This document shows, piece after piece, positions 6,286 through 26,030 of a DNA stretch of 64,000 bases (position 1 is the stretch's first letter; each line of letters opens with the position of its first letter). The notes beneath the pieces are model-generated. The model did not search any database and was not told the DNA's origin. It saw nothing but the letters and a program-made list of their open reading frames with translations. Position numbers and translations under genes: made by a program. The stretch is from positions 192,559-256,558 of IMG/VR virus record IMGVR_UViG_3300023175_000005. One strand, written 5' to 3'.

Positions 6286-6313
6286 AATATAGCACCAAAC
6301 AAGAAAGTGTCAA
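6286..6313 (-). promoter_or_regulatory. sigma70-like early promoter
   Basis: TTGACA-N16-TATATT (TGC-TATATT), followed by TATAGGCACTGAT. Confidence 0.65.
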
Positions 6314-7892: not shown

Positions 7893-7920
7893 ATACGTAT
7901 CCTTTTAAAAACTACGTATA

Positions 7921-7928
7921 TATTTATC
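7921..7928 (-). promoter_or_regulatory. T4-type late promoter (GATAAATA)
   Basis: Intergenic match to the recurrent TAAATA motif, analogous to T4 TATAAATA. Confidence 0.65.
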
Positions 7929-7931
7929 TTT

Positions 7932-11728: not shown

Positions 11729-11799
11729 AGTATATCTCCTTCATTGCTCTATGCGTTTGGGTAAACAGAATTTGCCTAAGCGTTTACTGTCTACATAAC

Positions 11800-11807
11800 T
11801 ATTTATC
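11800..11807 (-). promoter_or_regulatory. late promoter (GATAAATA)
   Basis: Intergenic motif match. Confidence 0.55.
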
Positions 11808-11823
11808 ATTTTGCAATTAACTA

Positions 11824-12381
11824 TCAAATACTTTCGATTAATGCTCTTTGCATTGCACGTTTTTGATCTTTATAAGAAACTTCTACTAGATTATTAGGTT
11901 TAATCTTAGAAAAAACAAATTCTACTGCACTAAATGGAATATGTGCTTCAATGCCATCTGGCACTGCAACTAGATATTGTTTTATGTCTTTACCGCTAAT
12001 AATTGCAATACTATCTTGTTGCCCTAGTAGGTAAAAATCTGCAGGATTTTCAATCTCTACACCTTTGTTCTTACCTAAACTGTTTTTAAGTTTTACTTTG
12101 ATAAATGCTTTTTCTTTGCCTGTTTTTGTAAACAGACCATTTGCCATATATTTAAATTCTAAATCTAAACCTGTTTTAACATCATGATGATCTCTACCAA
12201 TATCGTCTACCCATTGTAGACGTCCTTGTGTATAAACTTCTAGAGATTGTTCAATAATGTCTGCTTTATCAAATCGATCCTTACGATCATTAAGTTGATC
12301 GCCTACACTTGCTATTAGTTTAGCATATCGATTAGATTGTATTACTTCGCTAAGTACTTTCGCATAAGTTTGTGTGTTCAT
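11824..12381 (-). CDS. hypothetical protein, possible PD-(D/E)xK nuclease
   Basis: E...GRD...LEFK pattern; has its own sigma70-like promoter. Confidence 0.4.
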   Translation of the reverse strand: MNTQTYAKVLSEVIQSNRYAKLIASVGDQLNDRKDRFDKADIIEQSLEVYTQGRLQWVDDIGRDHHDVKTGLDLEFKYMANGLFTKTGKEKAFIKVKLKNSLGKNKGVEIENPADFYLLGQQDSIAIISGKDIKQYLVAVPDGIEAHIPFSAVEFVFSKIKPNNLVEVSYKDQKRAMQRALIESI

Positions 12382-12414: not shown

Positions 12415-12443
12415 AATATAACACACAAACACCCAAATGTCAA
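12415..12443 (-). promoter_or_regulatory. sigma70-like promoter
   Basis: TTGACA-N17-TATATT. Confidence 0.65.
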
Positions 12444-13675
12444 TCTTTTAAAAAACCAAATTCAGGATAAAGATCTAAGAATTTTGTTGCTCTTGTACTG
12501 TCAAAATAATCCAACATGTATCTAAAATAATCACGTTGTTTATCTGATAAAGTTTTTTGTGGCTCCGTTTTAATCCAATCTAACCAGTTGTAGTCGTCTA
12601 TTAGGTTTAAAGTTTTTAACTCTGGTAAGAAAGTTTCAATTTTTTTTACAATTTCAATTCTGTAATCAATGGGTGAGTTGGCAAAATGTAATGGCTCTGG
12701 CCAATCTAAAAATGTTGTATTAAAAGGAAACTTATTTTGTTTAATAAAGTCAAGCAAATTTGGCAAATCTTTTAGATTTAGCAATTGTATTGTAGGCTCT
12801 AAGGTAATTTGAAAATTCTCATATTGGTCGCATATTTTTTTAGATCTTAAAATCTTGCTTTCCAATGCAGACCAAGAACTAGGGTATCGAACATATTCTA
12901 AAACTTTTCCAGTAGCATCCAAACTTATTGATAAGTTTACATGCTTAAACTTTGTAAGGTATTTTTCTATCCATGATTCTTTGATAATTGTGCCATTTGA
13001 AATTATGTGTACCTTTATATGACCGCTTTCTTTTCTATTCACTAATTCTTCTATCAAAGATGTAAATCCCTTCATCACAAACGGCTCGCCGCCGACTGCC
13101 ATAATCTCTTGAGTTCTTTTTGCATTTTCAAGTATATGGTCAACAAATCGCTGGTTGAAATTATTAGATGATGTAGAAAGAACTTCTAGGTCTTTACTAT
13201 TGGTATAAGGATTGCTTTTGCCGAATTTATTATATTCTAGCATGTTCTTTGCAATTTGATTGCTCAATGTAGGGTTACACATCACGCACTGCAAGTTACA
13301 TTCGTTGCTCATTCTCAAATCAAAACTCAGAGGACTAGGAACAACTGTATGGGCATTTTTATAATAATAATCGGCTAATGATTTCCATTTATGATTTTCA
13401 TACTGTCGGTTTGAAATGATTCCCTGTTCTTCACTTTCAATACAACTTTTACAGATATTTTTAGGGATGATTCTTTGATTGAATTTGTGTCTTAATTTTT
13501 GTAAAGTCTTGCTGTTCCATACTTCATCGACATCCTTGCCTAGAATATTAATATCGTCTGAATCTAATTGTTTTGCATAACAACAGGCTTTCATATGCCC
13601 TGTTGTTGTCACAAACATTTTAACAAAAGGATGGACACAAAAATTTTTGTATAAATCTTCTATTTCATTCGTCAT
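12440..13675 (-). CDS. radical SAM protein with N-terminal SPASM/twitch-like domain
   Basis: CNLQCVMC and GGEP; N-terminal FCVHPF..ACC..CKSC. Confidence 0.88.
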   Translation of the reverse strand: MTNEIEDLYKNFCVHPFVKMFVTTTGHMKACCYAKQLDSDDINILGKDVDEVWNSKTLQKLRHKFNQRIIPKNICKSCIESEEQGIISNRQYENHKWKSLADYYYKNAHTVVPSPLSFDLRMSNECNLQCVMCNPTLSNQIAKNMLEYNKFGKSNPYTNSKDLEVLSTSSNNFNQRFVDHILENAKRTQEIMAVGGEPFVMKGFTSLIEELVNRKESGHIKVHIISNGTIIKESWIEKYLTKFKHVNLSISLDATGKVLEYVRYPSSWSALESKILRSKKICDQYENFQITLEPTIQLLNLKDLPNLLDFIKQNKFPFNTTFLDWPEPLHFANSPIDYRIEIVKKIETFLPELKTLNLIDDYNWLDWIKTEPQKTLSDKQRDYFRYMLDYFDSTRATKFLDLYPEFGFLKD

Positions 13676-13681: not shown

Positions 13682-14071
13682 TTATGATACTTCACTTCTT
13701 CCTTTATCTATAGGTACAACATTAATATAGCCTGCACCTCTGTCTGTATCTAAACCTTCATCTACAAGCATATTGTAAACAATATCTTTAAACCATCTAT
13801 CAACAATTTCTTCTTCAGGATCAACATCTGTTCCATAACCTGCTTCTAAAAGTTGTTTAATAAAATATTCATTCCAATCTAGTTCAAAGAATCCGTTACG
13901 AATATTTTCTTCATTCACTTGCACATCTAAAACACTTACCCATGGCTCTTTTCTTTTTGTTGCATATTCTTTTGGATCTTTCTTTTTTAGAAACTCGAGT
14001 TTTTCTTTTTCAAACTTTGCCTTTTCTTCTTCGGCTTTTTTGTCTCTAACAATTTTATTCCACCATCCCAT
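13682..14071 (-). CDS. hypothetical phage protein
   Basis: 129 aa ORF with GFFELDWN motif. Confidence 0.75.
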   Translation of the reverse strand: MGWWNKIVRDKKAEEEKAKFEKEKLEFLKKKDPKEYATKRKEPWVSVLDVQVNEENIRNGFFELDWNEYFIKQLLEAGYGTDVDPEEEIVDRWFKDIVYNMLVDEGLDTDRGAGYINVVPIDKGRSEVS

Positions 14072-14140
14072 TATAAGTGTTTCCTTAGTTTTTTGTATTG
14101 TTCTTCAGTGACTATCCCACTAGCGTACTTACTAATTTCC

Positions 14141-15034
14141 TTATGTTCCCCAGGCATTTCCGAATAGGCTAATGTGGAGTCTTGGAGTGAACCTCCAGCC
14201 TCGTTCCATACAGAGCTTCGCCACCTCTTGTACCGTGATGTTGTACCCTTCCGAGCGACCGCCAAGCGGCATAAGATAGACAGGGCATTCCACACCCGCT
14301 GAACGATATTCACTAACTGCTCTACTAACTTCATCAACATCATCCATATCAGCAACAACAAATTTAAGATACACAGAACTGCTGTCACAACGAGCGTAAT
14401 CACGCAAGACGTCAGGTTTGATAGCTGAATCCCAAGTTTCTCCGCTGACGGATAACTTAGGAGAACAACTAAATGTCCATTCAATTCTGTCATTGTTGTT
14501 GATGTAATTGAACAAATCATCATGTAAAAATTGTGTAGTGTTTGTTTCAAACGTGACATTTTTTAAATCTTTCATTTTCGGATGTTCAAACAACTCTACG
14601 TAGAGTCGTTGCCATGCAAGTAATGGTTCACCGCCTGTCATAATCAAATGAATATCTTGTCCATTATCTTGTGTCCATTTGCCTTCCGGCAATAAACTAA
14701 TCAAATGATCTACAACTTCGTCTACTTCTGCAAGTTTGTTAAAGTGTTTAAACTCTGGATAGATACTAGCATATGTATCACAACCTGTGTGAATAATAGG
14801 TAAATCTTCAAATTTTTCTGTAGTTTCGTGTACGCCTGCGTCAAGTAGTGCCTTTACTTCTGGATTGTAACGATTGCCTTCTGCGTGTTGTTCCCAACGA
14901 TTCTTGTCTTTTGGTAAGCCAAAATTCATACAACGAAAGTTGCAACCAAATGTACGTAAAAATACGCTAGGTACTCCTACGTATTTACCCTCACCTTGTA
15001 CACTATAAAATGCTTCACTGTAACGTAATTTCAT
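14141..15034 (-). CDS. queE: 7-carboxy-7-deazaguanine synthase (radical SAM)
   Basis: SEAFYSVQGEG, FLRTFGCNFRC...CDT, TGGEP, ETN, SPKL, RLH. Confidence 0.92.
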   Translation of the reverse strand: MKLRYSEAFYSVQGEGKYVGVPSVFLRTFGCNFRCMNFGLPKDKNRWEQHAEGNRYNPEVKALLDAGVHETTEKFEDLPIIHTGCDTYASIYPEFKHFNKLAEVDEVVDHLISLLPEGKWTQDNGQDIHLIMTGGEPLLAWQRLYVELFEHPKMKDLKNVTFETNTTQFLHDDLFNYINNNDRIEWTFSCSPKLSVSGETWDSAIKPDVLRDYARCDSSSVYLKFVVADMDDVDEVSRAVSEYRSAGVECPVYLMPLGGRSEGYNITVQEVAKLCMERGWRFTPRLHISLFGNAWGT

Positions 15035-15653
15035 GTGTCTGTTCCTTTATATAATTTGCAATATTTGTACCAAACTCTTTATGCACTCCGTAACCTGGAT
15101 GACGTTTGTCTTTTGCCAAATCACTATCTTTTCTTCTTCTCATAGTATCAATGTCTTCTACTGCAATAAAATCTATGTTATTCCATTTTTCGTGTTGAAA
15201 GTGCCAAGGTTTTGCATTAGCATGGTAATTGATTATGTTATGCTCGTCTAAGTAAGATTTTGCTACTCTCATGTATAAGTTAGTTGTCCAATTAGAATCA
15301 TAATCTGTATAAAGATTTTTAAAATATGATTTAATTGCTTTATCGCCTTTCATACCCCACATCTTTACTTGTACTGAATTCATTGATATTTCGTCAGTTA
15401 GTATTGCATGTCTGTTATGAAATGTCCATAAACAAATAACTGTGTCACCTTCTTGGTATTCAAATGTCAACAAGTCGTTAAGTATTTCTTTATTTGAATA
15501 ACCACTCATTCCTTTGTTAATGCATTCTAAATTTAACAATTTAGAAACAACAGAAGGCCAAGCAAGTTTGCTCGGCTCTTCATTGTGCGGCCATATATCT
15601 TTTAAATTATCACCGTATGTCAAACTACAACCAAATGCAATTAACCTTGCCAT
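15015..15653 (-). CDS. SGNH/GDSL-like hydrolase or acyltransferase
   Basis: FGCSLTYG block I, N.G.SG.SN block II, DxxHP block V. Confidence 0.65.
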   Translation of the reverse strand: MARLIAFGCSLTYGDNLKDIWPHNEEPSKLAWPSVVSKLLNLECINKGMSGYSNKEILNDLLTFEYQEGDTVICLWTFHNRHAILTDEISMNSVQVKMWGMKGDKAIKSYFKNLYTDYDSNWTTNLYMRVAKSYLDEHNIINYHANAKPWHFQHEKWNNIDFIAVEDIDTMRRRKDSDLAKDKRHPGYGVHKEFGTNIANYIKEQTHEITLQ

Positions 15654-15760
15654 TCTGCTTTTGCCTTGATAAATCTTTCTGCTAGATCGTATTTAAGTTG
15701 CAGATTAAAAATGGTTGTAGTGTTATAAGGTTGTGTAAAAGAATAATTAATTTCAAACAT
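15641..15760 (-). CDS. small hypothetical protein (39 aa)
   Basis: Hand translation MFEINYSF...EWQG; TAATG overlap with the folE stop; fills the gap. Confidence 0.45.
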   Translation of the reverse strand: MFEINYSFTQPYNTTTIFNLQLKYDLAERFIKAKAEWQG

Positions 15761-16443
15761 TAGCAAGCAAATTCCTGTTGTAGTTTGATGTTGTCAAAGA
15801 ACTCTTTCTTAGTTGTAGGATCATCTTTAAAACTACCTCTTAGCACAGTTGTTTGTGTAAGTGAACTATGTGCCATAATTCCGCGATTCTCGCAGCAGCC
15901 GTGTGTTGCTTGAATGTATACACCTAAGTGCTCGGCACCTGTCGCTTTTTGAATCTCACGTGCAATATCATTTGCAAGTTCTTCTTGCAGTGTGCCGCGT
16001 CTTGCACACCACTGTGCAATTCGTGTATATTTAGAAAGACCAATTAATTTTTCAGCAGCAATAATACCAATGTATGCAGTGCCAACAACAGGCTGGTGAT
16101 GATGTGAACACATTGATTTAAGTTCACTGCGTACTACTAGCATACCTTCATAACGGTCTTCCGAATCATTTGGAAATGCTGTTGCATCAGGCTTAGGATC
16201 ATAACGTCCTGCCATAATTTCATTTATATACATTTTTGCTAGACGTCTGCCTGTATCCTTTGAATTAGGATCATTTACAATGTCAATACAAAGACTTTCA
16301 AGAACGCTTTCGAACTTAGGTGTAAGTTCTTCTATAAGGGCTTCTTTGTCACCTTTTTGCATAACATATGATATGTTATCGCCAGCCCAGTAACGTTTAC
16401 CAGCATCTTCTAATCGTTGTTTTAGTTCTAAACTTTTTGTCAT
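15760..16443 (-). CDS. folE: GTP cyclohydrolase I
   Basis: SMCSHH, IGLSK..R, LQE, HGC...RG motifs. Confidence 0.95.
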   Translation of the reverse strand: MTKSLELKQRLEDAGKRYWAGDNISYVMQKGDKEALIEELTPKFESVLESLCIDIVNDPNSKDTGRRLAKMYINEIMAGRYDPKPDATAFPNDSEDRYEGMLVVRSELKSMCSHHHQPVVGTAYIGIIAAEKLIGLSKYTRIAQWCARRGTLQEELANDIAREIQKATGAEHLGVYIQATHGCCENRGIMAHSSLTQTTVLRGSFKDDPTTKKEFFDNIKLQQEFAC

Positions 16444-16449
16444 TTATTT

Positions 16450-16511
16450 CTCCGAGTTATAGACGAGGATGTCTATTAATTTAATATACCATGTATTTAG
16501 GTTTTTGTCAA
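16450..16511 (-). promoter_or_regulatory. folE promoter(s) and 5' leader hairpin
   Basis: TTGACA-N17-TATATT with CTAAATA in the spacer; ATAGAC-ATCCTC-GTCTAT hairpin 5 nt before the GGAG SD. Confidence 0.6.
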
Positions 16512-16759
16512 GATATTTCTTCAATATCTGTTACATCACTAAAAGGAACTACACGTTTGATAAATTGTTTCTCAGCATCTTTAATTTCGTACAGTTCTCT
16601 TTTGCTATCTTGAGATAATAGAACACCTTCTCTTTCTAGTTCGACATATGCATTAACCGGAAGATCTGCCATGCTATACATTCCACCAAGTCTGCCAAAT
16701 TTGTCTACAGGCCATTCTGCTTTATACTTGCATTTATATTCTTTATATTCAGTACTCAC
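16508..16759 (-). CDS. hypothetical protein
   Basis: 83 aa ORF in operon. Confidence 0.65.
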   Translation of the reverse strand: MSTEYKEYKCKYKAEWPVDKFGRLGGMYSMADLPVNAYVELEREGVLLSQDSKRELYEIKDAEKQFIKRVVPFSDVTDIEEIS

Positions 16760-17348
16760 TTACATTCTCCCAAGGATAAACTAACCAAACATCTTCTTCT
16801 GCTTTATTGATTTCGTGTGCGTAATAACGAACTAATCCGCAGTCACTTGCTAAATTTTCAGTTAAAGTTGCGAAACGAACGTTTTGGTCCCAAACTCTGT
16901 TCCATCGATCATGATCGGGTAAACAACCACTAGTCCAGTCTTTTACAATCCAGTTAAATGTTGTACCAGTGTCGTTAATATCGTCTACAATAAGAATATT
17001 ACTTTTGTTTTCAATAGTAATAATATCAACACCTGCACTTGCTTGAATGTCTTGATTATGAGTTTGAATTTTCATATCTTCATATCCAAATGCATCTTCT
17101 GCCATCCAACAGTTGCTTTCGTTTCCGTAACCTTCATTGTCATCACGCAAACTAACCTTTAGTGCTTCGCAACGAATACCAGTCATGTTAGAAATAATAG
17201 TTGCAGGAATGTTACCACCTCGTGTAATACCTACAATGTAATCAGGACGCCAATTATCTTTATACATCTGCATGACAATACTTGCACACATCTTTTCTAC
17301 GTCTTGCCACGAATAATAATGTTTCTTAATCATTCTTTTTCCACTCAT
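16749..17348 (-). CDS. type I phosphoribosyltransferase (xanthine/guanine PRT-like)
   Basis: IVGITRGG, PRPP-binding ILIVDDINDTGTT, C-terminal WLVYPWE typical of Gpt-like enzymes. Confidence 0.88.
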   Translation of the reverse strand: MSGKRMIKKHYYSWQDVEKMCASIVMQMYKDNWRPDYIVGITRGGNIPATIISNMTGIRCEALKVSLRDDNEGYGNESNCWMAEDAFGYEDMKIQTHNQDIQASAGVDIITIENKSNILIVDDINDTGTTFNWIVKDWTSGCLPDHDRWNRVWDQNVRFATLTENLASDCGLVRYYAHEINKAEEDVWLVYPWENVSEY

Positions 17349-17553
17349 CCATTTCAGTTTTTATATCAGTAATTTGTTCGTTTGCAATACCAGCAGCCAT
17401 TGATTGAACTTGTTCTAGTAAGTGCCTACAAGTAGATTCGTCATATTGTTTATAACTAATTTCAGCAAATTCATTACGAATACGATGTGCTTGTATACAC
17501 AAATCTTTCATTGCATTTATACGTCTAATCCATTCTTCAATTGGATGTTGCAT
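17326..17553 (-). CDS. hypothetical protein
   Basis: 75 aa, translationally coupled. Confidence 0.65.
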   Translation of the reverse strand: MQHPIEEWIRRINAMKDLCIQAHRIRNEFAEISYKQYDESTCRHLLEQVQSMAAGIANEQITDIKTEMDEWKKND

Positions 17554-17969
17554 TAAAATGGTACCTCTGCTTCTGGTTCGTGATTACCTTTATAGTCTTG
17601 ATGAACCATTTTGTAAATTGATTCAAAGTTTTTAAAAGCTTTTTCTAAACCGGGATAATGTTGACACATATCTTTAATTTTATTTAATGAAGGCATTGTA
17701 TCTACAAATTCAGTTTGTTCCCAAGTAATATTGTCACTCCAGTGTGTATCATCAATTGTGATGGTTAAATTACCATCACTAATAGTACTGGCATTATTAA
17801 TATTAATGTCTGATATATTAAATGTTAAATCTTCGTCAGAAATAATGTCTATAGTTGCTGTTGTGATATCACTTATACTAGTTGAATATGTGTGGTCTGT
17901 ACTTGTACCAAAAATAATATCATCATCATTACCCATCTGCAATATTCCTGTATAGTTCGGTTCCGTCAA
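17553..17969 (-). CDS. hypothetical protein (Thr/Ile/Asp-rich N-terminus)
   Basis: ORF in operon; C-terminal MC..YPGL.KAF..F motif. Confidence 0.65.
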   Translation of the reverse strand: MTEPNYTGILQMGNDDDIIFGTSTDHTYSTSISDITTATIDIISDEDLTFNISDININNASTISDGNLTITIDDTHWSDNITWEQTEFVDTMPSLNKIKDMCQHYPGLEKAFKNFESIYKMVHQDYKGNHEPEAEVPF

Positions 17970-18987
17970 AAAATTCTTTGTTAAGTTTAGTGCGCTGTTT
18001 TTCTAAACTTATAAGATAGTCATCGTAGTTTTCCATATAGTCAACAATCTTGGCAGCAATGTCTCCTCTATGTTTTCTATATGCACTATAATCTTCAGTC
18101 CATTGACTAGGATATTTAAATTCGGGCAATGCCATTTCTGAATAACTTAATCTATCAGGTACCATAGGAATAGCATCTACTAGAGCGCCTTCGTACCAAC
18201 TGATACCTAGTGTTTCTTGTAAGTTAGCACTAAACACAAGTTTTGCTTCTCCTAACAAGTTGTGATATTCATTTTTAGTAAGCGTTTGCTCTTGACATAC
18301 AACAAATTCATATTCGGGTAGTTGTTGTTTTAAATCATGGAATATATCAACTTGTTTTTCTGGAGCAATACGATGCGGGAAAAGAATTAGATCACGCTTC
18401 TCCATACCTTTGTATTGATCTAAACTGCTACGTAAATATTCCATAGGCCAACCTACACGATGTGTTTTATCTATATCAACTTGATAATCTTCACCTAATG
18501 TATCTGCAAACATTTCAATATGAAAGTCAGTTGCAAAAAAGTTATCATCATAACATTCAAACATTGACATTTCAGCATGTCTTACCCAGGGCTTATCTCC
18601 AATCAACCTGCCAAGAAAGTCATGAGGGTCATAACTACCAGCATGCCAAAGCCCGCCGATGCTAACATCAACGTCCAAGAGTTCTGCCATATAACGTAAC
18701 TGAATAACAGTAGGGTTCCAAGCATCGGTATATAAGAAATAATCTCCATTTTGAATTTGCCCTTTACAAAACATTTCGCCTATGATTTCTAGTTGTTTTG
18801 ATTTGTAAACATTGGTTCCGCCAAAATTGAGAAATGCCCCAGGCGTTGTTGCCTGAGGCGTCTCGCCACCACTGATGACTTTTACATTTTCGTTTGTAGA
18901 TCGTGATAGTTGCTTTGGAAGGTAATCTTTCCATTGCTTAGTGTAGCGTGTATCAACTGCTTCAATATCTACAATATAAATTGTCAT
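17929..18987 (-). CDS. GT-B retaining glycosyltransferase, GT4/GTDC1(QTMAN)-like
   Basis: FPHRIAPEK; Y..LL.EA.LVFS..LQETLGIS.YEG (E-x7-E); P.VPDRLSYSE. Confidence 0.8.
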   Translation of the reverse strand: MTIYIVDIEAVDTRYTKQWKDYLPKQLSRSTNENVKVISGGETPQATTPGAFLNFGGTNVYKSKQLEIIGEMFCKGQIQNGDYFLYTDAWNPTVIQLRYMAELLDVDVSIGGLWHAGSYDPHDFLGRLIGDKPWVRHAEMSMFECYDDNFFATDFHIEMFADTLGEDYQVDIDKTHRVGWPMEYLRSSLDQYKGMEKRDLILFPHRIAPEKQVDIFHDLKQQLPEYEFVVCQEQTLTKNEYHNLLGEAKLVFSANLQETLGISWYEGALVDAIPMVPDRLSYSEMALPEFKYPSQWTEDYSAYRKHRGDIAAKIVDYMENYDDYLISLEKQRTKLNKEFFDGTELYRNIADG

Positions 18988-19199
18988 TAATGTCTCCGAT
19001 TGTTAAAACTTCGACTTGCGTTACGTGACTTAGCACGTAAATAATTTTGATATTTAATATAAGATTGCCAAATAGGCGCATCTTTTTTATACAAATCAGC
19101 CTCGTTAAAGACTTTACCTTCAAAGCGACAATAGTCGCGGAACTTATCCAAATCATTAAACACTTTTGTATAAGCGTCACGATTGAACTTAATAGTCAT
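18987..19199 (-). CDS. hypothetical protein
   Basis: 70 aa; TAATG-coupled to the glycosyltransferase. Confidence 0.7.
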   Translation of the reverse strand: MTIKFNRDAYTKVFNDLDKFRDYCRFEGKVFNEADLYKKDAPIWQSYIKYQNYLRAKSRNASRSFNNRRH

Positions 19200-19217
19200 T
19201 TACCTAATTCCTTTTTA

Positions 19218-19685
19218 CTATGGGTAAACAATTTGACAGCCATTTTCGCCATCTTCGGCGACATCAATAACAACAAAGCGGCCGGGATACTTTGCGTTAA
19301 TCTGTGTGTACAAGTCATCTGCGATCATTTCGCACGACTTGTGATTTAGTTCAATAACCTTGTCGTCATAAAGACTTTCTAGCCAACGCTTGAACTGAAT
19401 AAATTCAATGTCACGATCATTATGTGTAACTTGAATTTGTACCTTAAAATGAAAGATGTGTCTATGAGCCACACCTAAAAAACTTACGTCATCCCAGCCA
19501 CCTGTTGCTAGTGCTGGATCGTCTTTTGCCGCAGGATAAAGATGGATACCTTCTTTACGGAATGTTACCCAAATACTACGTTTTGCATTTTCTAATCTGT
19601 GTGAAATACTCAATTTTTTATCTTCCTGTCGCATTTTCCAAAGCATCCAATCATAATAACGCTTAGGTTCTTTGTCTCTACTCAT
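19218..19685 (-). CDS. QueD-like T-fold protein, DpdL type (predicted CDG decarboxylase family)
   Basis: LGVAHRHIF (LxxxHRHxF) in place of QueD CxxxHGH; SCE and EDGENG motifs; lies in the que/dpdA cluster. Confidence 0.75.
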   Translation of the reverse strand: MSRDKEPKRYYDWMLWKMRQEDKKLSISHRLENAKRSIWVTFRKEGIHLYPAAKDDPALATGGWDDVSFLGVAHRHIFHFKVQIQVTHNDRDIEFIQFKRWLESLYDDKVIELNHKSCEMIADDLYTQINAKYPGRFVVIDVAEDGENGCQIVYP

Positions 19686-20250
19686 TTACTATAGTACCAT
19701 TTTCAATACTTGTCAACTCGATAATTTCATCAGATCCATAATTAGACCAGTCAGTAAATTTTTTCCTATCCATTAAGTCGTGTAAACTATGACACCAAAC
19801 ACCTGGATTAGTTGCCTTAAAATCTTTATCATCAATTTTCAACATAGTGTTATAATTCCATAGTTTGATATATGGAATAGGAACTCTTAGTTGCGGAATA
19901 AAATTTTCGTATTCTGTTAAACCACTTTCTAGAAATGCTTCTGCAAGTGCAATAGGAATATCTAAACTGCAATAATAGTCTTCATTTAGACAATCCTTGA
20001 TCATTGATTCCCACCATTCCCAGTCTTCATCTGTATCAGGATTAAAACTATGATTAGCACCAAAAAACAAATGCTTAATTTTATTCAAATTAGCAATGCC
20101 CTTGATTTCTTCTAAAGGCTGTTTGCCTGTAATAAACAAAGTTTTTAAACCAAATGCAGGTGTACGTTCTACTTCGTTACCAATGAAGTAAACAGCATCA
20201 TCTGCTGAACCTGTAGCATAATCTCTATTCATTAATATTGAGCCTCCCAT
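19678..20250 (-). CDS. hypothetical protein in deazaguanine cluster (probable start 20232)
   Basis: G.EVE.TPA.G..TLF, FFGANHSF and NPGVW motifs; overlaps the start of the QueD-like gene. Confidence 0.75.
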   Translation of the reverse strand: MGGSILMNRDYATGSADDAVYFIGNEVERTPAFGLKTLFITGKQPLEEIKGIANLNKIKHLFFGANHSFNPDTDEDWEWWESMIKDCLNEDYYCSLDIPIALAEAFLESGLTEYENFIPQLRVPIPYIKLWNYNTMLKIDDKDFKATNPGVWCHSLHDLMDRKKFTDWSNYGSDEIIELTSIENGTIVNE

Positions 20251-20600
20251 TCGTTGCCGCCGTTACCATATTGAAGAACTTCTACTTTTTTAACACGATC
20301 ATATCTAAAACTTCTAAAACCGTTTGATTCAATAGCCCATACAACAACATTTTTTTCATGTTTTTGTGTTGTATCTTTCTTTGGGTCTGGAAAGAAAGAC
20401 GGCATAAGAGTACAAGGCATCACTCTTTCAGTGCCGTCTAATTTGTTAAAAGTTACTTCAACTACTTCTTTTTCTAATAGCGCAACTAATTCATCTTTTG
20501 TAGGAATACCCTTTAGGGCTGCTACTGTTTCTTCAACTTTTGCCATTTTTAACCTTATACATCTCGTTCCAAATGTCCCAACGTTTTTTATTGTACTCAT
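20232..20600 (-). CDS. WYL_2/DUF2693-like SH3-fold protein (start may be 20546)
   Basis: VTF.K.DG.ER.M.CTL...FRSFR.D pattern typical of T4-like phages. Confidence 0.7.
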   Translation of the reverse strand: MSTIKNVGTFGTRCIRLKMAKVEETVAALKGIPTKDELVALLEKEVVEVTFNKLDGTERVMPCTLMPSFFPDPKKDTTQKHEKNVVVWAIESNGFRSFRYDRVKKVEVLQYGNGGNEWEAQY

Positions 20601-20686
20601 TTATTTGTTCATTAGTATAATTGTTTTTATGCATACTGTCAATGATTTTTTCAATTTCTTCTAAAGCCATTTCTAATGCTTCTAAT

Positions 20687-20875
20687 CTAAGTTCTTTTTC
20701 CGAGCGCAATGATATTCTCCAGTCTGTGTATTTCGTCTTTATACCAAAGTTTTTTTGTTTTTAATTTCCTAATTGCGTCATCTACAATGTATGATTTTTC
20801 AAGTTCAATAATTTCTTCATCTAGTTTTCTGTGCTTTCTTTTCAGTTCGACTAAATGTTCTTCATGTCCCATCAT
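20687..20875 (-). CDS. DUF465/YdcH-like coiled-coil protein
   Basis: L...H..LD.EI..LE...I..LK..KL..KDEI. Confidence 0.7.
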   Translation of the reverse strand: MMGHEEHLVELKRKHRKLDEEIIELEKSYIVDDAIRKLKTKKLWYKDEIHRLENIIALGKRT

Positions 20876-22332
20876 TACAATTCCTCGAATAGATTGTTAA
20901 ATTGCGTTTGAGCATTTACAATACGCTTGCCTGTATTGCCTCTAGTACCTATAATACTATCCCAGTATCTAGAAAATTCTAAAATGACAGCCTCGGCTTT
21001 TTGTCTGTCATCAGTTTCAAAAATTGCATCAACAACATCTCTAAACGCAATTCTATCAAATTTTTCTTGTATCAACATATTAGGAATAATACCTGCGTCA
21101 TATTGACGGTTTGCTTCTTGTACAGCATTAATGTGCATCCATACATTGTGACCCATCATAATTGCATACGAGAAACTATCCCATGAAGTTTTTCCTTCTT
21201 TACCGATCTTATTTAGATCGCCCGGACCGTATATACAAATTTCTTTTGCTTGTAGTCCTGTTGTTATAGGCGAATCTAAGAAACTAGGATGTTTTCCTTC
21301 TCTAACAAAAGCTTGTCCAAAAGCAGTTGTATCATTTGCAAGTGCTTTGTCGTCGATACTAGGTACCATTCTATATACCCACTTGCTTCTATCTTCTGTT
21401 TCTAGTTCACAGTAAATCTGTCCATTAGCAGTTGCAAGGAAAGGCGAAGCACAATCAAATGTAATAGTAAAGTTTTCGTTATGATATTTGCGCACTGCTC
21501 TTTGAATGTCAGTGAGCAGTGTAGCCCACTCTAGTTTTGAAGTTCCTAAGAAGTGCATGAAATCATGTTTGCCTTTTTCAAGCAATCCGTCAAAACGTAA
21601 CGCAACAACACGTTTAAGTGCTAGGTGTACATCGCACATATTTTGTCCACCCATTGACCATCCGTTGAAATGATCTTCATATTTTTTAGGATCACAGTAG
21701 TCTTTCATTTGATCGTACCAGTCATCTGCGTCTGCATGATTCTCGCCTTGTAGTACGTTCAAAAACTTACAAGCACCTGTACGATGCTTCATCCAGTAGT
21801 CATTATTAATACGTGTTGCTTTAACTGCTTCTTGGTAAGTTGAAATGCCAGTTGCTTTTGCACCTGCAGGCGAACGTGCAACCCATGCCGGAATATCAAG
21901 GATCATACCGTAGTCCATATAAGCATCCATCCAACGCAGTACGCCATCACGTTTCTTTTGTGCCTTTGGACAGTTTGGATCTTTCCAGTCACCTTCCCAA
22001 ACACCCTTACCAATCTGGAAGCCACCTGAGTCGCCAAGTAGCCAAGTGTTTGCTCTGTCTCTGTTACGCACCATATCTTCCTTAGGTGCATGTTTTGTAG
22101 TATCTAAGTCAGCATGTCCTGCTGAGTATAATGTCCACTTATATTGAAACTGTCCTTGATCTTTATTTAGATAGTTAAGACTTTCAACACCATTATTTAA
22201 ATTACTAGGTATTCTAGCAGGGTCGACATAGTTTTCAAAACGCTGTTTGCCTACGTAAGTAGCATAAAAGCCACTCAACGCGGGCAGAAAAACAGCATAG
22301 TCATTTTGTGTTGCAGTTAAATTTGTATTCAT
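20875..22332 (-). CDS. dpdA: DNA 7-deazaguanine transglycosylase (TGT/DpdA family)
   Basis: DSGGFQ, MILDIP, VLQG, HFLG and FDCASP TGT motifs; lies with folE and queE. Confidence 0.85.
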   Translation of the reverse strand: MNTNLTATQNDYAVFLPALSGFYATYVGKQRFENYVDPARIPSNLNNGVESLNYLNKDQGQFQYKWTLYSAGHADLDTTKHAPKEDMVRNRDRANTWLLGDSGGFQIGKGVWEGDWKDPNCPKAQKKRDGVLRWMDAYMDYGMILDIPAWVARSPAGAKATGISTYQEAVKATRINNDYWMKHRTGACKFLNVLQGENHADADDWYDQMKDYCDPKKYEDHFNGWSMGGQNMCDVHLALKRVVALRFDGLLEKGKHDFMHFLGTSKLEWATLLTDIQRAVRKYHNENFTITFDCASPFLATANGQIYCELETEDRSKWVYRMVPSIDDKALANDTTAFGQAFVREGKHPSFLDSPITTGLQAKEICIYGPGDLNKIGKEGKTSWDSFSYAIMMGHNVWMHINAVQEANRQYDAGIIPNMLIQEKFDRIAFRDVVDAIFETDDRQKAEAVILEFSRYWDSIIGTRGNTGKRIVNAQTQFNNLFEEL

Positions 22333-23060
22333 TATTTACTTTGTGCTGGCAGGATATAGTCATACTTGGCCATACCACTGTCTACTGTAATCATCATAGC
22401 ACCTTGATCTGTGATGCTAATTTTCTTATCGCCATCTAGCCCTAAAATAGAAATAGTTTGCGCAACTGGCCATGCCCAAGTATGTTGTAAGTTTCCGCCA
22501 ACATCATGTTGGAATGTAAACTTACCCGCATGTGTATTCAAGTCACCAAAGTAAAAATTAAGATTTCCATCTTCTGTCTTAACTTGGAATACAGGTTCTT
22601 CTGAATGAGCACCGGCCATTAGTTTCATACGTGCAATTGCTGCAACACTTGGTTGAAATTCTACATCCCATGTGCTACCTTTAAATTTTACACTTTTTAG
22701 TTTTTCTTCAATAATCGCTTTGTTCATAAAGCGATAATCATTTTGGAAGTCTCCACCTTCATTTTCAAAATGAATGTGTGTTGGAATAGTTTCACCATTC
22801 CGATCTTCTTGCACTACGTCAATTTTTGCTTTATCTTGATATTCTGGGTTCTTCAAATGATATGCAAGTTTGTTAAGATCTGGCATACCAAATGTACCTA
22901 CAAATTCTGACACTGGCGAATGTGTTGTAGCACTAAGTACAACACTTCTATCTTCCGCCATACTTTCAATACTTGTCTCTTGTTCTGCTACAACTTTTAA
23001 TGTTGTAATAAAGCCGAGACTATGTGTGTGCGACACAACATCTTGTAAGATATCTTTCAT
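22332..23060 (-). CDS. putative DNA polymerase sliding clamp
   Basis: 242 aa, clamp-like size and beta/alpha pattern ending YDYILPA; PolB and clamp loader in the window. Confidence 0.55.
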   Translation of the reverse strand: MKDILQDVVSHTHSLGFITTLKVVAEQETSIESMAEDRSVVLSATTHSPVSEFVGTFGMPDLNKLAYHLKNPEYQDKAKIDVVQEDRNGETIPTHIHFENEGGDFQNDYRFMNKAIIEEKLKSVKFKGSTWDVEFQPSVAAIARMKLMAGAHSEEPVFQVKTEDGNLNFYFGDLNTHAGKFTFQHDVGGNLQHTWAWPVAQTISILGLDGDKKISITDQGAMMITVDSGMAKYDYILPAQSK

Positions 23061-23833
23061 ACTGTTTCTCCATTGTTAAGTTCTATTATATTGCCTAGTG
23101 TGTTGTTTGTCAATAGTTTTTCTATCGAGTATTTAGGTTTAAAGCCTAATGTTTTAATTTTTTCCATATTTGCACAAGTCCATTGTCTTTCATTTGGGGT
23201 ATTTAGACGGATGGGCAAATCTTCTGCAAAGTCACGGACACGAAAAGGATGTCCTGTACCTATATCAATTTCTCCTTTATACTTGCTATTCATGCACAAT
23301 TCTATTGCATCACATACATCTTCAATATGTATAAAATCTCTATAATGATTTGTAACATATTCAAGTTCTCCGTCTAGATACTTTTGCATAAACATTCCTT
23401 TGCGTGGAATATCTGAATACACTGTATGAAATCTCATGCATAGTGTATTTGAATAACATGATGCTGCTTCTTCTACAATATATTTGCTGGCTGCATATGG
23501 ATTTAGATGTGGTTCATATGCTGAACTAGAACTTGCAATCAACATACGTGTATCTGGATAGCGTTCTAAAAGTCTTTTGGTAACTTCTACATTATTTTGC
23601 CAATAGCCTGCAGGATCATTCATTGATTCACGAACACCACTTTTTCCTGCTAGGTGTATAATTAAATCAAATTCTTCTTTCAATTCACAAGTTGTCAGAT
23701 CTTGACTGTTGTTAAGTTTGTCTCTATCCCAACCGTCCTTAAGATCAAACCCTACAACACTATGTTTTTTTGTAAGTCTTTTTAGTAAATGACTTCCAAT
23801 AAAGCCTCTATGGCCTGTTAACATAACTTTCAT
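23057..23833 (-). CDS. NAD-dependent sugar epimerase/dehydratase (extended SDR)
   Basis: TGHRGFIG, HLAG, SSS, YAASK, RDFIH. Confidence 0.92.
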   Translation of the reverse strand: MKVMLTGHRGFIGSHLLKRLTKKHSVVGFDLKDGWDRDKLNNSQDLTTCELKEEFDLIIHLAGKSGVRESMNDPAGYWQNNVEVTKRLLERYPDTRMLIASSSSAYEPHLNPYAASKYIVEEAASCYSNTLCMRFHTVYSDIPRKGMFMQKYLDGELEYVTNHYRDFIHIEDVCDAIELCMNSKYKGEIDIGTGHPFRVRDFAEDLPIRLNTPNERQWTCANMEKIKTLGFKPKYSIEKLLTNNTLGNIIELNNGETV

Positions 23834-24524
23834 TTAAGATCTCCATTGTATCCTTCCAGTCTTTGACATGATAGGATTTACCATTGCCTCTTTTGGCAAT
23901 TGCAGTTGATAATGGTTCGTCATTACCACCAGGTTCTTGTTTATCGCCAAAAAAGATTAGTTTGTCATGGTCGTTAAAATCATTAATAATTTGTGATTTG
24001 TCACAACCTGTAGGATAGATATCAATACCTGTTTCTCCTCCTACTTTTGCTGTAATGTTTTCAAATTCTGTGTTAATTTGATAAGCAATACTTTCACGTT
24101 CTCTACTTTCGAGATCGTGTTTAATATATAATTTACGTTCGCCTAGTGTGCAATTACGCCCTACAATTGAAAAGTTTACACAACCTGGACGTACTTCGAT
24201 ATGGTTTCCTGTGCGTAAAGGAAAATTACTTGCTTGTAGCCATCCATTCATTAAATCCATAAGTTCTTTTGGTGCCGTCCAGTCGTTAGTTTTTACATTT
24301 ACACCGTGACTCCAAACATCATTACCAGAACAATTATAAACAACTTTTGCTGTGTTAAACAAAACATTTCCAATTTGTTCAACTGTTTTATCTTTGTCAC
24401 TACCGGTAATCAGATAAACATCGTTAGTTGTTACAAAATCAAAAAAGAATTTGTTAAACTCAGGATCAATAGTTTGTCTACTAGGAGTTAGTGTTCCGTC
24501 GACATCAAAAATAAACTTATTCAT
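23808..24524 (-). CDS. phosphomannomutase, HAD-IIB (eukaryote-type PMM family)
   Basis: FDVDGTLT..R, TGSD, IE.R...NFS..GR, GG..G.DI.P.G.DK, FFGDK..PGGND. Confidence 0.85.
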   Translation of the reverse strand: MNKFIFDVDGTLTPSRQTIDPEFNKFFFDFVTTNDVYLITGSDKDKTVEQIGNVLFNTAKVVYNCSGNDVWSHGVNVKTNDWTAPKELMDLMNGWLQASNFPLRTGNHIEVRPGCVNFSIVGRNCTLGERKLYIKHDLESRERESIAYQINTEFENITAKVGGETGIDIYPTGCDKSQIINDFNDHDKLIFFGDKQEPGGNDEPLSTAIAKRGNGKSYHVKDWKDTMEILNESYVNRP

Positions 24525-24678
24525 TTATGCATACCGCCTTTTCTCCTTCTGTAAACAATGCTTCAAGAACTGCTGCATTTATACTGCATTGCTGCTGTGT
24601 ATTATACTCGTTAAATTTTGTAACTTTATATTCATCAATATCTACAAGTGAACTAATTATCAATAGTGTCCACATCAT
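24517..24678 (-). CDS. small hypothetical protein (53 aa)
   Basis: Hand translation MMWTLLIISS...AVCINE; GAGG SD; overlaps the PMM start. Confidence 0.55.
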   Translation of the reverse strand: MMWTLLIISSLVDIDEYKVTKFNEYNTQQQCSINAAVLEALFTEGEKAVCINE

Positions 24679-24808
24679 CTTTTTCCTCTCTTATTATAAA
24701 GTGTACTTTTACAATACCTTTCTTTTCTTTTTTGATATAAAATTCTAACCCATTCTCTATAAAAATTTTTCTAAGTTCATTAAGTGTTGGATCGGTATCT
24801 CGTATCAT
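24653..24808 (-). CDS. small hypothetical protein (51 aa)
   Basis: Hand translation MIRDTDPTLNELRK...; fills the gap. Confidence 0.5.
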   Translation of the reverse strand: MIRDTDPTLNELRKIFIENGLEFYIKKEKKGIVKVHFIIREEKDDVDTIDN

Positions 24809-24820
24809 CCTTGTTGCGCC

Positions 24821-25249
24821 TTATGCATTTGATTCCCTTTCGCATACTCGTTTTCTTAAATCGCTGCTTGAGAAGCGGTGATCTCTTTTGTTGAAATGTA
24901 GCTGGATACCCCGCTTCTTGCAAATATCCTTGCCAGTAAAATCCTTTTCACGATACTCTTCACCTAGTATTCTAACATCAATATGATACATTGTCAAGAT
25001 ATCTTCTAGGTCCTGTTCAGTTGCATAAGGAATTATTTCATCTACATAACTCACTCCTTTGAGTTGTGTATAACGTTCCACTATAGTTTGTACAGGTGGA
25101 TTCTTCTCTGGCCTATCTACACTGGGATCCATTTGCAATCCGCATATAAGATAGTCACATTGTTCTTTTGCTTCACGTAGCATTTGTACATGTCCTGCAT
25201 GTAACAAATCAAATGTTGAACAAGTAAATCCTACTTTCATTCGTACCAA
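24821..25249 (-). CDS. cytidylyltransferase (TagD/glycerol-3-phosphate CTase-like)
   Basis: TFDLLHAGH; R.H.FSSS.LR. Confidence 0.9.
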   Translation of the reverse strand: MVRMKVGFTCSTFDLLHAGHVQMLREAKEQCDYLICGLQMDPSVDRPEKNPPVQTIVERYTQLKGVSYVDEIIPYATEQDLEDILTMYHIDVRILGEEYREKDFTGKDICKKRGIQLHFNKRDHRFSSSDLRKRVCERESNA

Positions 25250-25741: not shown

Positions 25742-26030
25742 TTAATAAAGTACTCCATTTTTTTAATTTTTCACGTTTTTTGTTGGAACGTTCAGCAACT
25801 TCAACATGAGTAACAATTCCATGATCAATCATAAGTTCGATCATACACTGCACATCGCCAATTTCTTCCATCAATTTAACACGCTGATCTTCTTCAATTA
25901 ATTTAGTTGTAGCGTATTTCCGCATAATCTTACTACAACGTTGTGTAAGTTCTCCACATTCTTCCATAGTAATTGTCATTAGTTGTTGTAATTTGTTAAT
26001 AGGACTTTCCATATTATACTCCAAATTCAA
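25734..26030 (-). CDS. MazG-like NTP pyrophosphohydrolase
   Basis: EECGEL...EEIGDV. Confidence 0.75.
   Translation of the reverse strand: MNLEYNMESPINKLQQLMTITMEECGELTQRCSKIMRKYATTKLIEEDQRVKLMEEIGDVQCMIELMIDHGIVTHVEVAERSNKKREKLKKWSTLLNE

Follow-up and report, generated by a model that had tools for sequence, protein, structure and literature searches.

The 64,000-nucleotide stretch analysed here (the window; positions 192,559–256,558 of IMG/VR virus record IMGVR_UViG_3300023175_000005) derives from a marine jumbo phage and carries the known gene set for replacing guanine in DNA with 7-deazaguanine, together with a predicted glycosyltransferase (GT). The genes lie on the minus strand, are tightly packed and often overlap at their start and stop codons (Table 1). 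The gene arrangement described in an earlier sequence-only reading was confirmed, with all of its named open reading frames (ORFs) present at the stated coordinates, although three of its assignments required correction. Profile searches of the window found no queC-like gene and no canonical queD.

Table 1. Features of the 7-deazaguanine cluster and its flanks. L numbers denote loci of the comparative set.
Position (strand)	Feature	Length (aa)	Supporting observations
14141–15034 (−)	QueE-like radical SAM enzyme (CDG synthase)		PHROG 2076 (QueE-like), 1e-49; five NCBIfam QueE models match partially, all below their cut-offs; 31% identical to the annotated QueE of PA5oct
15015–15653 (−)	orf212, function unknown, lineage-specific		No significant hit in Pfam, PHROGs or NCBIfam; found in only 5 loci, the closest relatives
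15760–16443 (−)	FolE, GTP cyclohydrolase I		Pfam GTP_cyclohydroI, 1e-39; NCBIfam FolE, 2e-41
16749–17348 (−)	Purine phosphoribosyltransferase (PRTase); may salvage guanine released by DpdA or ribosylate a deazapurine base	199	Pfam Pribosyltran, 3e-9; best NCBIfam match xanthine PRTase, 1e-10; conserved in the marine lineage, PA5oct (gp321) and L087
17929–18987 (−)	Retaining GT4-type GT-B glycosyltransferase (predicted), the proposed tailoring enzyme	352	See text
18987–19199 (−)	orf70, small conserved ORF		Stop overlaps the GT start; conserved in 85 loci
19218–19685 (−)	DpdL, QueD paralogue; proposed CDG decarboxylase	155	LxxxHRHxF motif; see text
19678–20250 (−)	orf190, conserved protein of unknown function between DpdA and DpdL		Present in 79 loci of the marine lineage and in ACP17; no hit in Pfam, PHROGs or NCBIfam; model pLDDT 85.5, best PDB fold match only E 0.06, TM ≤0.36
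20232–20600 (−)	WYL_2 domain protein, inserted only in the closest relatives	122	Pfam WYL_2, 4e-11; present only in L007–L009 and L050
20875–22332 (−)	DpdA-like DNA guanine transglycosylase, remote TGT/DpdA superfamily member	485	See text
22332–23060 (−)	Sliding-clamp homologue; separates the sugar genes from dpdA and is not part of the pathway	242	PHROG 12062; 32–35% identical to PA5oct gp314 and to the Phosso protein annotated as a sliding clamp
23057–23833 (−)	SDR epimerase/dehydratase, possible sugar-nucleotide tailoring enzyme	258	Pfam Epimerase, 1e-24; NCBIfam GalE, 2e-17, and heptose epimerase, 6e-12; in nearly all marine relatives
23808–24524 (−)	PMM-type HAD-IIB phosphomutase, variably present	238	Pfam PMM, 2e-25; absent from L010–L016 and L073–L086, among others
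24821–25249 (−)	Small RfaE-domain-II/TagD-like nucleotidyltransferase, variably present	142	Pfam CTP_transf_like, 2.5e-15; NCBIfam rfaE_dom_II (heptose-1-P adenylyltransferase), 5e-21, and TagD, 1e-16; absent from L073–L086

The 485-residue DpdA-like protein returned no hit in Pfam, PHROGs or NCBIfam, but carries the DSGGFQ and FDCxxP (FDCASP) motifs. Comparison by hhalign gave 97.8% (E 7e-13) to the DpdA family of ACP17, BUDD and BCSR5, and a 50-sequence profile gave 82.7% (E 1e-5) to E. coli Tgt, aligning the QG, LG and FD(C/S)xxP segments. Both catalytic Asp residues, D101 and D293, are invariant in the family, which comprises 1346 clusters at 50% identity.

The protein with the LxxxHRHxF motif, which the sequence-only reading had described as QueD-like and as a possible source of a new product, is not a new enzyme but DpdL, described in 2023 as the proposed CDG decarboxylase of dDG phages (PMC10516641). 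It is 36% identical to phiST DpdL, with conserved HRH, H..DR..E, SCE and EDGEN segments, and tblastn finds DpdL in PA5oct, ACP17, Phosso, BUDD, BCSR5 and phiST. The baseline product expected without the GT is therefore dDG. Two further assignments were revised: an SGNH-like identity for orf212 has no support, and the supposed cytidylyltransferase scores best as RfaE domain II and then as TagD, rather than resembling a GDP-mannose enzyme.

The GT was modelled with a pLDDT of 92.2 and has a predicted GT-B fold. Its best Foldseek matches in the PDB are BshA, glycogen synthase, GlgM, MshA and PglA (TM 0.6–0.7), which are retaining GT4/GT5 enzymes. The window protein itself hits no Pfam GT model, but five of seven family members hit Glycos_transf_1. 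The R/K and E-x7-E motifs are intact, and residues R206, E210, K211, E258, G261 and E266 are invariant across phage and bacterial orthologues, indicating a real and, as inferred from sequence and model, probably active glycosyltransferase. The resemblance to GTDC1/QTMAN, the tRNA-queuosine mannosyltransferase, proposed in the sequence-only reading comes down to the generic GT4 motifs (HRxxPEK and E-x7-E): no family member hits DUF3524 even at E ≤ 10, and the top 50 PDB fold matches are BshA, glycogen synthase, MshA, PglA, TarM and the like, so that no specific link to GTDC1/QTMAN was found.

The main new result is comparative. The order DpdA-orf190-DpdL-orf70-GT-PRT-FolE-QueE recurs in all 80 IMG/VR loci of the marine lineage that reach far enough, and adjacency of the GT to DpdA and/or DpdL recurs in at least six other lineages, an arrangement far beyond chance. 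In PA5oct, gp316 (DpdA), gp317 (GT) and gp318 (DpdL) are consecutive; ACP17 has an orf190-like gene, DpdA, GT, DpdL and QueE; Phosso has DpdL followed by the GT; and the linkage is also found in BUDD, BCSR5 and loci L087–L090. In bacterial genomes of Methylobacterium, Pseudooctadecabacter, Sulfitobacter and Pelagibacterium, the GT sits beside DpdA and a YhhQ/Vut_1-like membrane protein even where DpdL, QueE and FolE are absent, and two natural GT4-DpdA fusion proteins exist. Co-occurrence of the GT with dpdA and the HRH enzyme in related phages, which had been set beforehand as a condition that could have refuted the proposal, thus comes out strongly in its favour. The association is not universal, as the DpdA subfamily also occurs without a nearby GT (loci L109 and L110), and a divergent GT relative in PhiXhv-12 sits in a sugar cluster with no dpd genes. 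As a contrast case in favour of the proposal, phiST, with measured 100% plain dDG, has DpdA3 and DpdL but no GT.

Genes for sugar handling accompany the GT in several of these settings. A PIG-L-like deacetylase lies next to it in BCSR5, BUDD and L087, and in PhiXhv-12, mirroring the BshA/BshB and MshA/MshB pairs; in the BUDD/BCSR5 branch this points to GlcNAc. In this window the sugar-handling neighbours are the SDR, the phosphomutase and the nucleotidyltransferase. Mannose donated by GDP-mannose, with the phosphomannomutase feeding its synthesis, as suggested in the sequence-only reading, is only weakly supported: there is no ManC-type enzyme, the nucleotidyltransferase is RfaE-II/TagD-like, and the phosphomutase and nucleotidyltransferase are missing from whole sublineages that keep the GT, so their link to it is only positional.

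The interpretation offered by the sequence-only reading is thus partly supported: the cluster is a 7-deazaguanine DNA-modification cluster with a GT, but neither mannose nor a GTDC1-type enzyme is favoured. On present evidence, the best explanation is a DpdA3/DpdL-type cluster with one extra tailoring enzyme, giving a glycosylated 7-deazaguanine in DNA (probability about 0.5). In this view, FolE and QueE would make CDG from GTP, with QueD probably supplied by the host or encoded elsewhere in the 256-kb genome; DpdL would convert CDG into 7-deazaguanine; the DpdA-like transglycosylase would exchange this base for guanine in phage DNA after replication, the PRTase recycling the released guanine; and the GT would then move a sugar from a nucleotide sugar onto the inserted base. 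The result would be a bulky glycosylated base that blocks restriction enzymes. Whereas the gene identities, the modelled GT fold and its motifs, and the conserved linkage rest on the analysis itself, the product of every step, the order of the steps, the acceptor atom and the sugar are inferred, and there is no chemical evidence for a sugar on any of these DNAs.

7-Deazaguanine has no hydroxyl, and retaining GT4 enzymes usually make O-glycosides. The most plausible linkage is an N-glycoside on a base nitrogen, by analogy with huimycin biosynthesis, in which the GT4-type enzyme HuiG uses UDP-GlcNAc to glycosylate a nitrogen of a 7-deazapurine base (bioRxiv 10.64898/2026.04.15.718813); this would remove the need for a hydroxyl, although HuiG acts on a free base and not on DNA. 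The sugar probably differs between lineages, the BUDD/BCSR5 branch likely using GlcNAc that is then deacetylated, and the marine lineage a hexose or heptose that would be either made or tailored by the SDR (with the phosphomutase and nucleotidyltransferase where present) or supplied by the host. Literature searches found no sugar-bearing 7-deazaguanine in DNA, in agreement with the sequence-only reading, and no paper describing such a system. Two published observations fit the proposal: PA5oct DNA resists G-site restriction enzymes and is attacked by nucleases that sense hypermodified G, the structure of the modification being unsolved (PMC12191111), and dpdA plus dpdL of ACP17 gave no dDG in E. 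coli, leading the authors to suggest that other enzymes may be needed (PMC10516641).

Of the alternatives, all of which appear unlikely, the least so is that the GT acts before insertion, on the free 7-deazaguanine base or on its nucleotide made by the PRTase, with DpdA inserting the glycosylated base or the glycoside remaining a soluble metabolite that never enters DNA. The activity of HuiG on a free base, the small-molecule substrates of BshA and MshA, the conserved PRTase and the pairing of the bacterial GT with a YhhQ-like base transporter are consistent with this. However, the DpdA family keeps the invariant Asp residues that in TGT enzymes bind and activate an unsubstituted base, a sugar on the base would be hard to fit into such a pocket, and a soluble metabolite would not explain fusion to a DNA transglycosylase. 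It is also doubtful that the DNA carries plain dDG or dCDG while the GT glycosylates a virion protein, a host envelope component or a host protein. dDG is the only chemistry known for a DpdA3 and DpdL set, many phages carry GT4 enzymes for other purposes, and the PhiXhv-12 relative lacks dpd genes; but adjacency to DpdA/DpdL holds across at least seven independent phage and bacterial contexts, fusions exist, and in the marine lineage the GT is translationally coupled inside the cluster. About equally doubtful is a role as an accessory partner that binds a nucleotide or DNA and enables base exchange without adding a sugar to the final product, filling the role that the DpdB ATPase plays for bacterial DpdA. 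Bacterial DpdA needs DpdB (cf. PMC10164549). The tighter coupling of the GT to DpdA than to DpdL, the fusions and the inactivity of the ACP17 pair in E. coli would suit such a role, whereas the invariant catalytic residues, the adjacent deacetylase and sugar-nucleotide genes, and the activity of phiST DpdA3 without any GT speak against it.

Modification of host or phage tRNA in the manner of glycosylated queuosine, which is made by a GT4 enzyme, as the GTDC1 analogy suggests, appears very unlikely, even though the TGT superfamily includes tRNA enzymes. PA5oct, with the orthologous gene set, has restriction-resistant DNA containing modified G, phages of the related DpdA3 type show up to 100% replacement in DNA, no tRNA genes are found in the window, the GT family gives no DUF3524 signal, and the bacterial versions sit with DNA methylase and Mrr-type nuclease genes. 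Equally remote is glycosylation of another modified base, such as 5-hydroxymethyl-pyrimidine in T-even and SP-15-type phages, with the position beside dpdA being incidental. Phage DNA glycosyltransferases with a GT-B fold are well known, and a Bacillus phage SP-15 GT appears among the distant fold matches, but no thymidylate-synthase-like hydroxymethylase was seen among the 40 largest ORFs of the window that were scanned, and the linkage to DpdA persists in bacterial islands that have no such genes.

The genes of the putative 7-deazaguanine modification cluster lie on the minus strand as a tightly packed, co-directional block in which many start and stop codons overlap. The gene cluster described by the sequence-only reading is present, whereas its interpretation, a glycosylated and possibly mannosylated 7-deazaguanine in the phage DNA, is only partly supported. 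At the GT locus the window matches the 256.5-kb IMG/VR contig IMGVR_UViG_3300023175_000005 (locus L007), with a 100% identical glycosyltransferase and the same gene order. A megablast search of the region against GenBank phages found nothing, and relatives are visible only at the protein level. FolE, the phosphoribosyltransferase (PRTase), the SDR protein, the PMM-type HAD protein and the small nucleotidyltransferase have clear Pfam matches. QueE matches the PHROG QueE-like family (1e-49) over its full length, and five NCBIfam QueE models match, all below their curated cut-offs. A 162-aa ORF overlapping the 3′ part of queE in another frame was treated as probably spurious, because the QueE profile covers the full 297 aa. 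The proteins read as DpdA, a glycosyltransferase (GT) and a QueD-like protein gave no family hit, and single-sequence searches with them against PDB sequences gave only noise; they were assigned by other routes.

Coordinates of the cluster proteins and of other features in the window and in related loci.
Locus	Coordinates	Strand	Feature
Window	14141-25249	-	Whole gene cluster
Window	14141-15034	-	QueE-like protein (297 aa)
Window	14071-14559		Probably spurious ORF (162 aa)
Window	17929-18987	-	GT4-type glycosyltransferase, predicted (352 aa)
Window	19218-19685	-	DpdL (155 aa)
Window	20875-22332	-	Remote DpdA-like protein (485 aa)
Window	24821-25249	-	Small nucleotidyltransferase
Window	204-2180		Protein with N-terminal Mtd_N domain (658 aa)
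Window	3724-5043		DUF2201 putative metallopeptidase with VWA-like domain
Window	5157-6245		Neighbouring ORF (362 aa)
Window	9804-10676		N6/N4 DNA methyltransferase
Window	12440-13675; 30667-31836; 31715-32836		Three further radical SAM proteins
Window	26014-28710		DNA polymerase (898 aa)
Window	35561-36394		NT5C-like deoxyribonucleotide 5′-nucleotidase domain
Window	40766-43015 and 43501-44331		ClpB-type chaperone and DnaJ
L001 (PA5oct)	989-6215		Split DNA polymerase
L001 (PA5oct)	10147-10524		DpdL
L004, L005, L087, L006 (BUDD/BCSR5-like phages and PhiXhv-12)	6876-7523, 6812-7519, 7001-7606, 7189-7797		PIG-L-like deacetylases with an HVDDE motif
L102, L100, L108, L099, L097 (bacterial loci)	7404-12321 (L102), 5345-10258 (L108), 5593-9071 (L099), 6086-9038 (L097)		Modules of YhhQ/Vut_1-like membrane protein, GT and DpdA
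L106 and L107 (fusion loci)	3175-5772 and 6040-8574		GT4-DpdA fusion proteins (865 and 844 aa)

The 155-aa protein carries LxxxHRHxF in place of the CxxxHGH motif of QueD, which is exactly the published signature of DpdL (PMC10516641). It is 36% identical to DpdL of Cellulophaga phage phiST, shares all of its conserved blocks, and was aligned with the proteins of phiST, ACP17 and other phages. It is therefore a member of a known family of QueD-like paralogues, with a predicted T-fold, and not a new enzyme. As expected for DpdL, it co-occurs with DpdA, FolE and QueE and without QueC, although a canonical QueD, also listed by the authors of that study, was not found in the window. CDG decarboxylation by DpdL is a proposed activity: dpdA plus dpdL of phiST or ACP17 yielded no dDG in E. 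coli, and the authors suggested that other enzymes may be needed (PMC10516641). In PA5oct, DpdL has HFH instead of HRH, showing that the arginine is not essential to the family.

The 485-aa protein was identified as a remote DpdA from motifs and profile comparisons. It has no Pfam, PHROG or NCBIfam hit, and among its relatives only the DpdA of BCSR5 reaches the curated TGT model PF01702, at E = 0.041. Profile searches of the PDB with three DpdA alignments gave at best weak TGT hits, three of five weak PDB hits being TGTs. Comparison by hhalign, by contrast, aligned its family with the ACP17/BUDD/BCSR5 DpdA family at 97.8% probability (E = 7e-13). An exhaustive profile search found 1346 clusters of relatives, and a 50-sequence profile built from them aligned with E. 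coli Tgt at 82.7% probability (E = 1e-5), covering the QG, LG and FD(C/S)xxP segments. The two predicted catalytic aspartates, D101 in the DSGGFQ motif and D293 in the FD(C/S)xxP motif, are invariant in 50 diverse family members, and the FDCASPF segment of the window protein aligns with FDCVMPT of Tgt.

The 352-aa protein is predicted to be a retaining GT4-type glycosyltransferase. Its structure model is confident (pLDDT 92.2) and shows a two-Rossmann GT-B fold, with 136 PDB matches at E ≤ 1e-3, led by GT4/GT5 enzymes. The best matches are BshA, glycogen synthase, GlgM, MshA, PglA, TarM and SdgB, all of which are retaining GT-B enzymes. The arginine and lysine predicted to bind the donor phosphates (R206 and K211) and the glutamates of the E-x7-E motif (E258 and E266) are invariant in 19 phage and bacterial orthologues. 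The window protein has no hit to the Pfam family model even at E ≤ 10, while five of seven family members hit Glycos_transf_1 (PF00534; best 6.8e-12). Searching 5.8 billion proteins with the GT returned only near-identical marine proteins, an alignment of seven GT sequences was too divergent for a pattern scan, and the PhiXhv-12 GT found nothing in IMG/VR.

The sequence-only reading had likened this protein to GTDC1/QTMAN, the tRNA-queuosine mannosyltransferase, but the segments concerned are the HRxxPEK-like and E-x7-E motifs shared with GT4 enzymes in general. GTDC1/QTMAN likewise has a GT4-type C-terminal domain and acts on a 7-deazaguanine derivative in a nucleic acid. However, none of the seven family members matches its N-terminal DUF3524 domain at E ≤ 10, within the limits of HMMER filters that may hide very weak matches, and no QTMAN entry appears among the top 50 PDB fold matches, in a PDB copy that may not contain a QTMAN structure. 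Its acceptor is the cyclopentenediol hydroxyl of queuosine, which this pathway, in which QueC, QueF, QueA and QueG were not seen, cannot make. A specific GTDC1 relationship was therefore rejected.

The GT travels with DpdA in a wide range of genomes. In all 80 IMG/VR loci of the marine lineage, the order DpdA, orf62, orf190, DpdL, orf70, GT, (orf138), PRT, FolE and QueE is kept wherever the contig reaches far enough. DpdA, GT and DpdL are consecutive in the PA5oct family; ACP17 has the order FolE, orf190-like, DpdA, GT, DpdL and QueE; and in Phosso DpdL is followed by the GT. In BUDD, BCSR5 and four IMG/VR relatives the GT lies next to DpdA, with DpdL, QueE and FolE nearby. Two other sampled DpdA loci have no GT, and neither does phiST, the one relative with measured plain dDG, at 100%. 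The coupling is thus strong but not universal, as expected for an optional tailoring step.

The GT also lies beside a DpdA of this subfamily in the bacterial genomes of Methylobacterium, Pseudooctadecabacter (P. jejudonensis), Sulfitobacter and Pelagibacterium, where it is preceded by a polytopic membrane protein of the Vut_1/YhhQ family, the family of the known queuosine-precursor importer. In several of these cases DpdL, QueE and FolE are absent. A conserved 530–585-aa protein with no Pfam hit usually follows, sometimes with a second GT4, and recombinases, a C5 DNA methylase or VapE-like genes lie nearby. A search started from DpdA instead of the GT recovered the same module (locus L108) and two proteins, P0133 and P0136, in which a GT4 domain is fused to the DpdA domain. 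The fusions have the GT4 domain at the N terminus and the DpdA domain at the C terminus, and each is followed by the 530-aa conserved protein; in L106 the fusion lies next to an Mrr_cat nuclease, an integrase and CBASS genes. These modules may represent a new Dpd-like modification or defence system.

The sequence-only reading proposed GDP-mannose as the donor, with the PMM-type protein supplying it, which is not well supported. The nucleotidyltransferase resembles RfaE domain II (heptose-1-phosphate adenylyltransferase) and TagD, and not ManC, although even its best score, 75 bits to RfaE domain II, is below the curated cut-off of 181.5, with TagD at 61 bits. No ManC-type gene or other gene for GDP-mannose synthesis was seen. 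PMM and the nucleotidyltransferase are absent from whole sublineages that keep the GT, whereas the SDR gene is nearly always present, and a clamp gene separates these three genes from dpdA. In the BUDD/BCSR5/L087 branch (L087 being an IMG/VR relative) and in PhiXhv-12, a PIG-L-like deacetylase lies next to the GT; in PhiXhv-12 a GlmS and a GFO/IDH/MocA oxidoreductase are also present, and no dpd genes are. GT4 plus PIG-L is the pairing that makes GlcN conjugates in bacillithiol and mycothiol synthesis, suggesting a GlcNAc-then-deacetylate chemistry in those branches. GDP-mannose was rejected as the specific donor, and we infer that the sugar varies by lineage.

7-Deazaguanine has no hydroxyl group to serve as acceptor. 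A useful precedent is huimycin biosynthesis, in which the GT4-type enzyme HuiG (KALB_4073) transfers GlcNAc from UDP-GlcNAc to a nitrogen of a 7-deazapurine base, that nitrogen being the 2-amino group. HuiG works on a free base in actinomycete secondary metabolism, in clusters that lack dpdA, and its known similarity to the phage GT is at the level of the GT4 class. An N-glycoside would work for any 7-deazaguanine, which fits the finding that the GT follows DpdA even where DpdL is missing. The invariant, predicted base-binding aspartates of DpdA argue, by inference only, that the base goes in unglycosylated and is decorated afterwards. That DNA is the target is suggested by PA5oct, whose DNA has a modified G and is attacked by nucleases that sense hypermodified G (PMC12191111).

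The genomic case is strong, resting on gene identities, the predicted GT fold and motifs, and conserved linkage, whereas the chemistry is unproven, and the activity of DpdA, DpdL and the GT, the acceptor atom and the sugar are inferred. What differs from the described DpdA/DpdL systems is an added, conserved GT. Searches of PMC and bioRxiv, which do not cover subscription-only papers, found no report of a glycosylated 7-deazaguanine in DNA or of a GT–DpdA association. The evidence does not exclude a widespread, so far undescribed class of DNA hypermodification, in which 7-deazaguanine inserted by a divergent DpdA is glycosylated by a dedicated GT4 enzyme, probably as an N-glycoside and with a lineage-specific sugar (hexose or heptose, GlcNAc or GlcN). 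We put the probability of this reading at roughly 0.45. In this view it would be used by abundant marine jumbo phages, the therapy-relevant Pseudomonas phage PA5oct and several plant-pathogen phages, and bacteria would use it as the modification arm of a new Dpd-like self/non-self system made of a YhhQ-like importer, GT, DpdA and the conserved 530–585-aa protein, sometimes as a GT–DpdA fusion next to an Mrr-type nuclease.

If a sugar is attached, it would be the first glycosylated purine analogue found in natural DNA and would add a new chemistry to the phage–host arms race. It would identify the modified G of PA5oct-like phages, which are used in phage-therapy research, and could explain why dpdA plus dpdL alone could not be reconstituted in E. 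coli. The gene set is very common in marine viromes, with more than 590 hits in IMG/VR and at least 8000 close protein relatives of the GT, and such DNA may therefore be under-represented or misread in sequencing surveys. A DNA deazaguanine glycosyltransferase would also be a useful enzyme for site-specific labelling of DNA.

Among described systems, the DpdA3/DpdL system of phiST (Cui, Hutinet et al., NAR 2023, PMC10516641) likewise clusters FolE, QueE, a DpdL with the LxxxHRHxF motif and a remote DpdA near the DNA polymerase, with no QueC, QueF or Gat-QueC, and the expected core base is 7-deazaguanine. phiST lacks the GT, orf190 and PRTase, and has QueD, MazG and a small ATPase instead; its DpdA3 is 259 aa long, compared with 485 aa here, and the two DpdA types are linked only by profile comparison through the ACP17 family. 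The window is syntenic with gp316–gp322 and flanking genes of the Pseudomonas jumbo phage PA5oct (Wroclawvirus), in the order DNA polymerase, clamp, DpdA (36% identity), GT (44%), DpdL (54–60%), PRT-like, QueE and RNase H. PA5oct lacks orf190, orf70, PMM and the nucleotidyltransferase, and its polymerase, a single ORF in the window, is split by a Hef-like homing endonuclease gene; as far as we could find, the chemical structure of its modified G is unpublished.

In the bacterial Dpd system (PMC10164549), DpdA/DpdB/DpdC insert preQ0 and make dADG. There too a TGT-superfamily transglycosylase inserts a 7-deazaguanine into DNA, and the bacterial relatives found here also sit in mobile or defence islands. 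Here, however, no DpdB or DpdC is present, the partner is a GT4 glycosyltransferase, joined in the bacterial versions by the conserved 530–585-aa protein, and Pfam TGT/DpdA models do not detect the DpdA subfamily. BshA/BshB and MshA/MshB, which pair a GT4 GlcNAc transferase with a PIG-L deacetylase, include the best structural matches of the GT, and the same pairing occurs in the BUDD/BCSR5/L087 and PhiXhv-12 clusters. Their acceptors are malate or inositol phosphate in thiol biosynthesis; there is no cysteine ligase here, and the window has no PIG-L gene. The T4 α- and β-glucosyltransferases and other phage DNA sugar transferases share the concept of a GT-B enzyme decorating an already non-canonical base to defeat restriction, but belong to different families (GT72, GT63), use a 5-hydroxymethylcytosine hydroxyl as acceptor and are not among the close fold matches.

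orf190, conserved in the marine lineage and in ACP17, gave no family hit, no PDB profile hit and no credible fold match. A 177-aa Phosso ‘glycosylase’ was considered as its equivalent, but BLAST and Pfam gave nothing and the idea was dropped. A PAPS-reductase-like protein of BUDD, considered as a QueC analogue, has no counterpart in the window. The PRTase recurs in PA5oct and in L087; we suggest that it salvages the guanine released by DpdA, or alternatively that it ribosylates a deazapurine base, as in the tubercidin and toyocamycin pathways. orf212, which the sequence-only reading called SGNH-like, and the WYL_2 gene occur only in the nearest relatives. The same is true of one of the three radical SAM proteins found besides QueE, a twitch-domain/SPASM type just downstream of the cluster (NCBIfam N_Twi_rSAM, 2e-82), and of an N6/N4 DNA methyltransferase near the cluster (Pfam N6_N4_Mtase, 7e-29), with which the phage may carry a second DNA modification.

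Elsewhere in the window, the NT5C-like nucleotidase domain may help to reshape the nucleotide pool. A full-length ClpB-type double AAA+ chaperone and a DnaJ with both J and C-terminal domains form an unusual chaperone pair for a phage. The Mtd_N (major tropism determinant) domain hints at a receptor-binding protein of the kind diversified by retroelements. The DUF2201 putative metallopeptidase with a VWA-like domain (Pfam 2e-37 and 1e-14) is of a type often paired with a MoxR-type ATPase, and the neighbouring 362-aa ORF is homologous to an ATPase of PA5oct.
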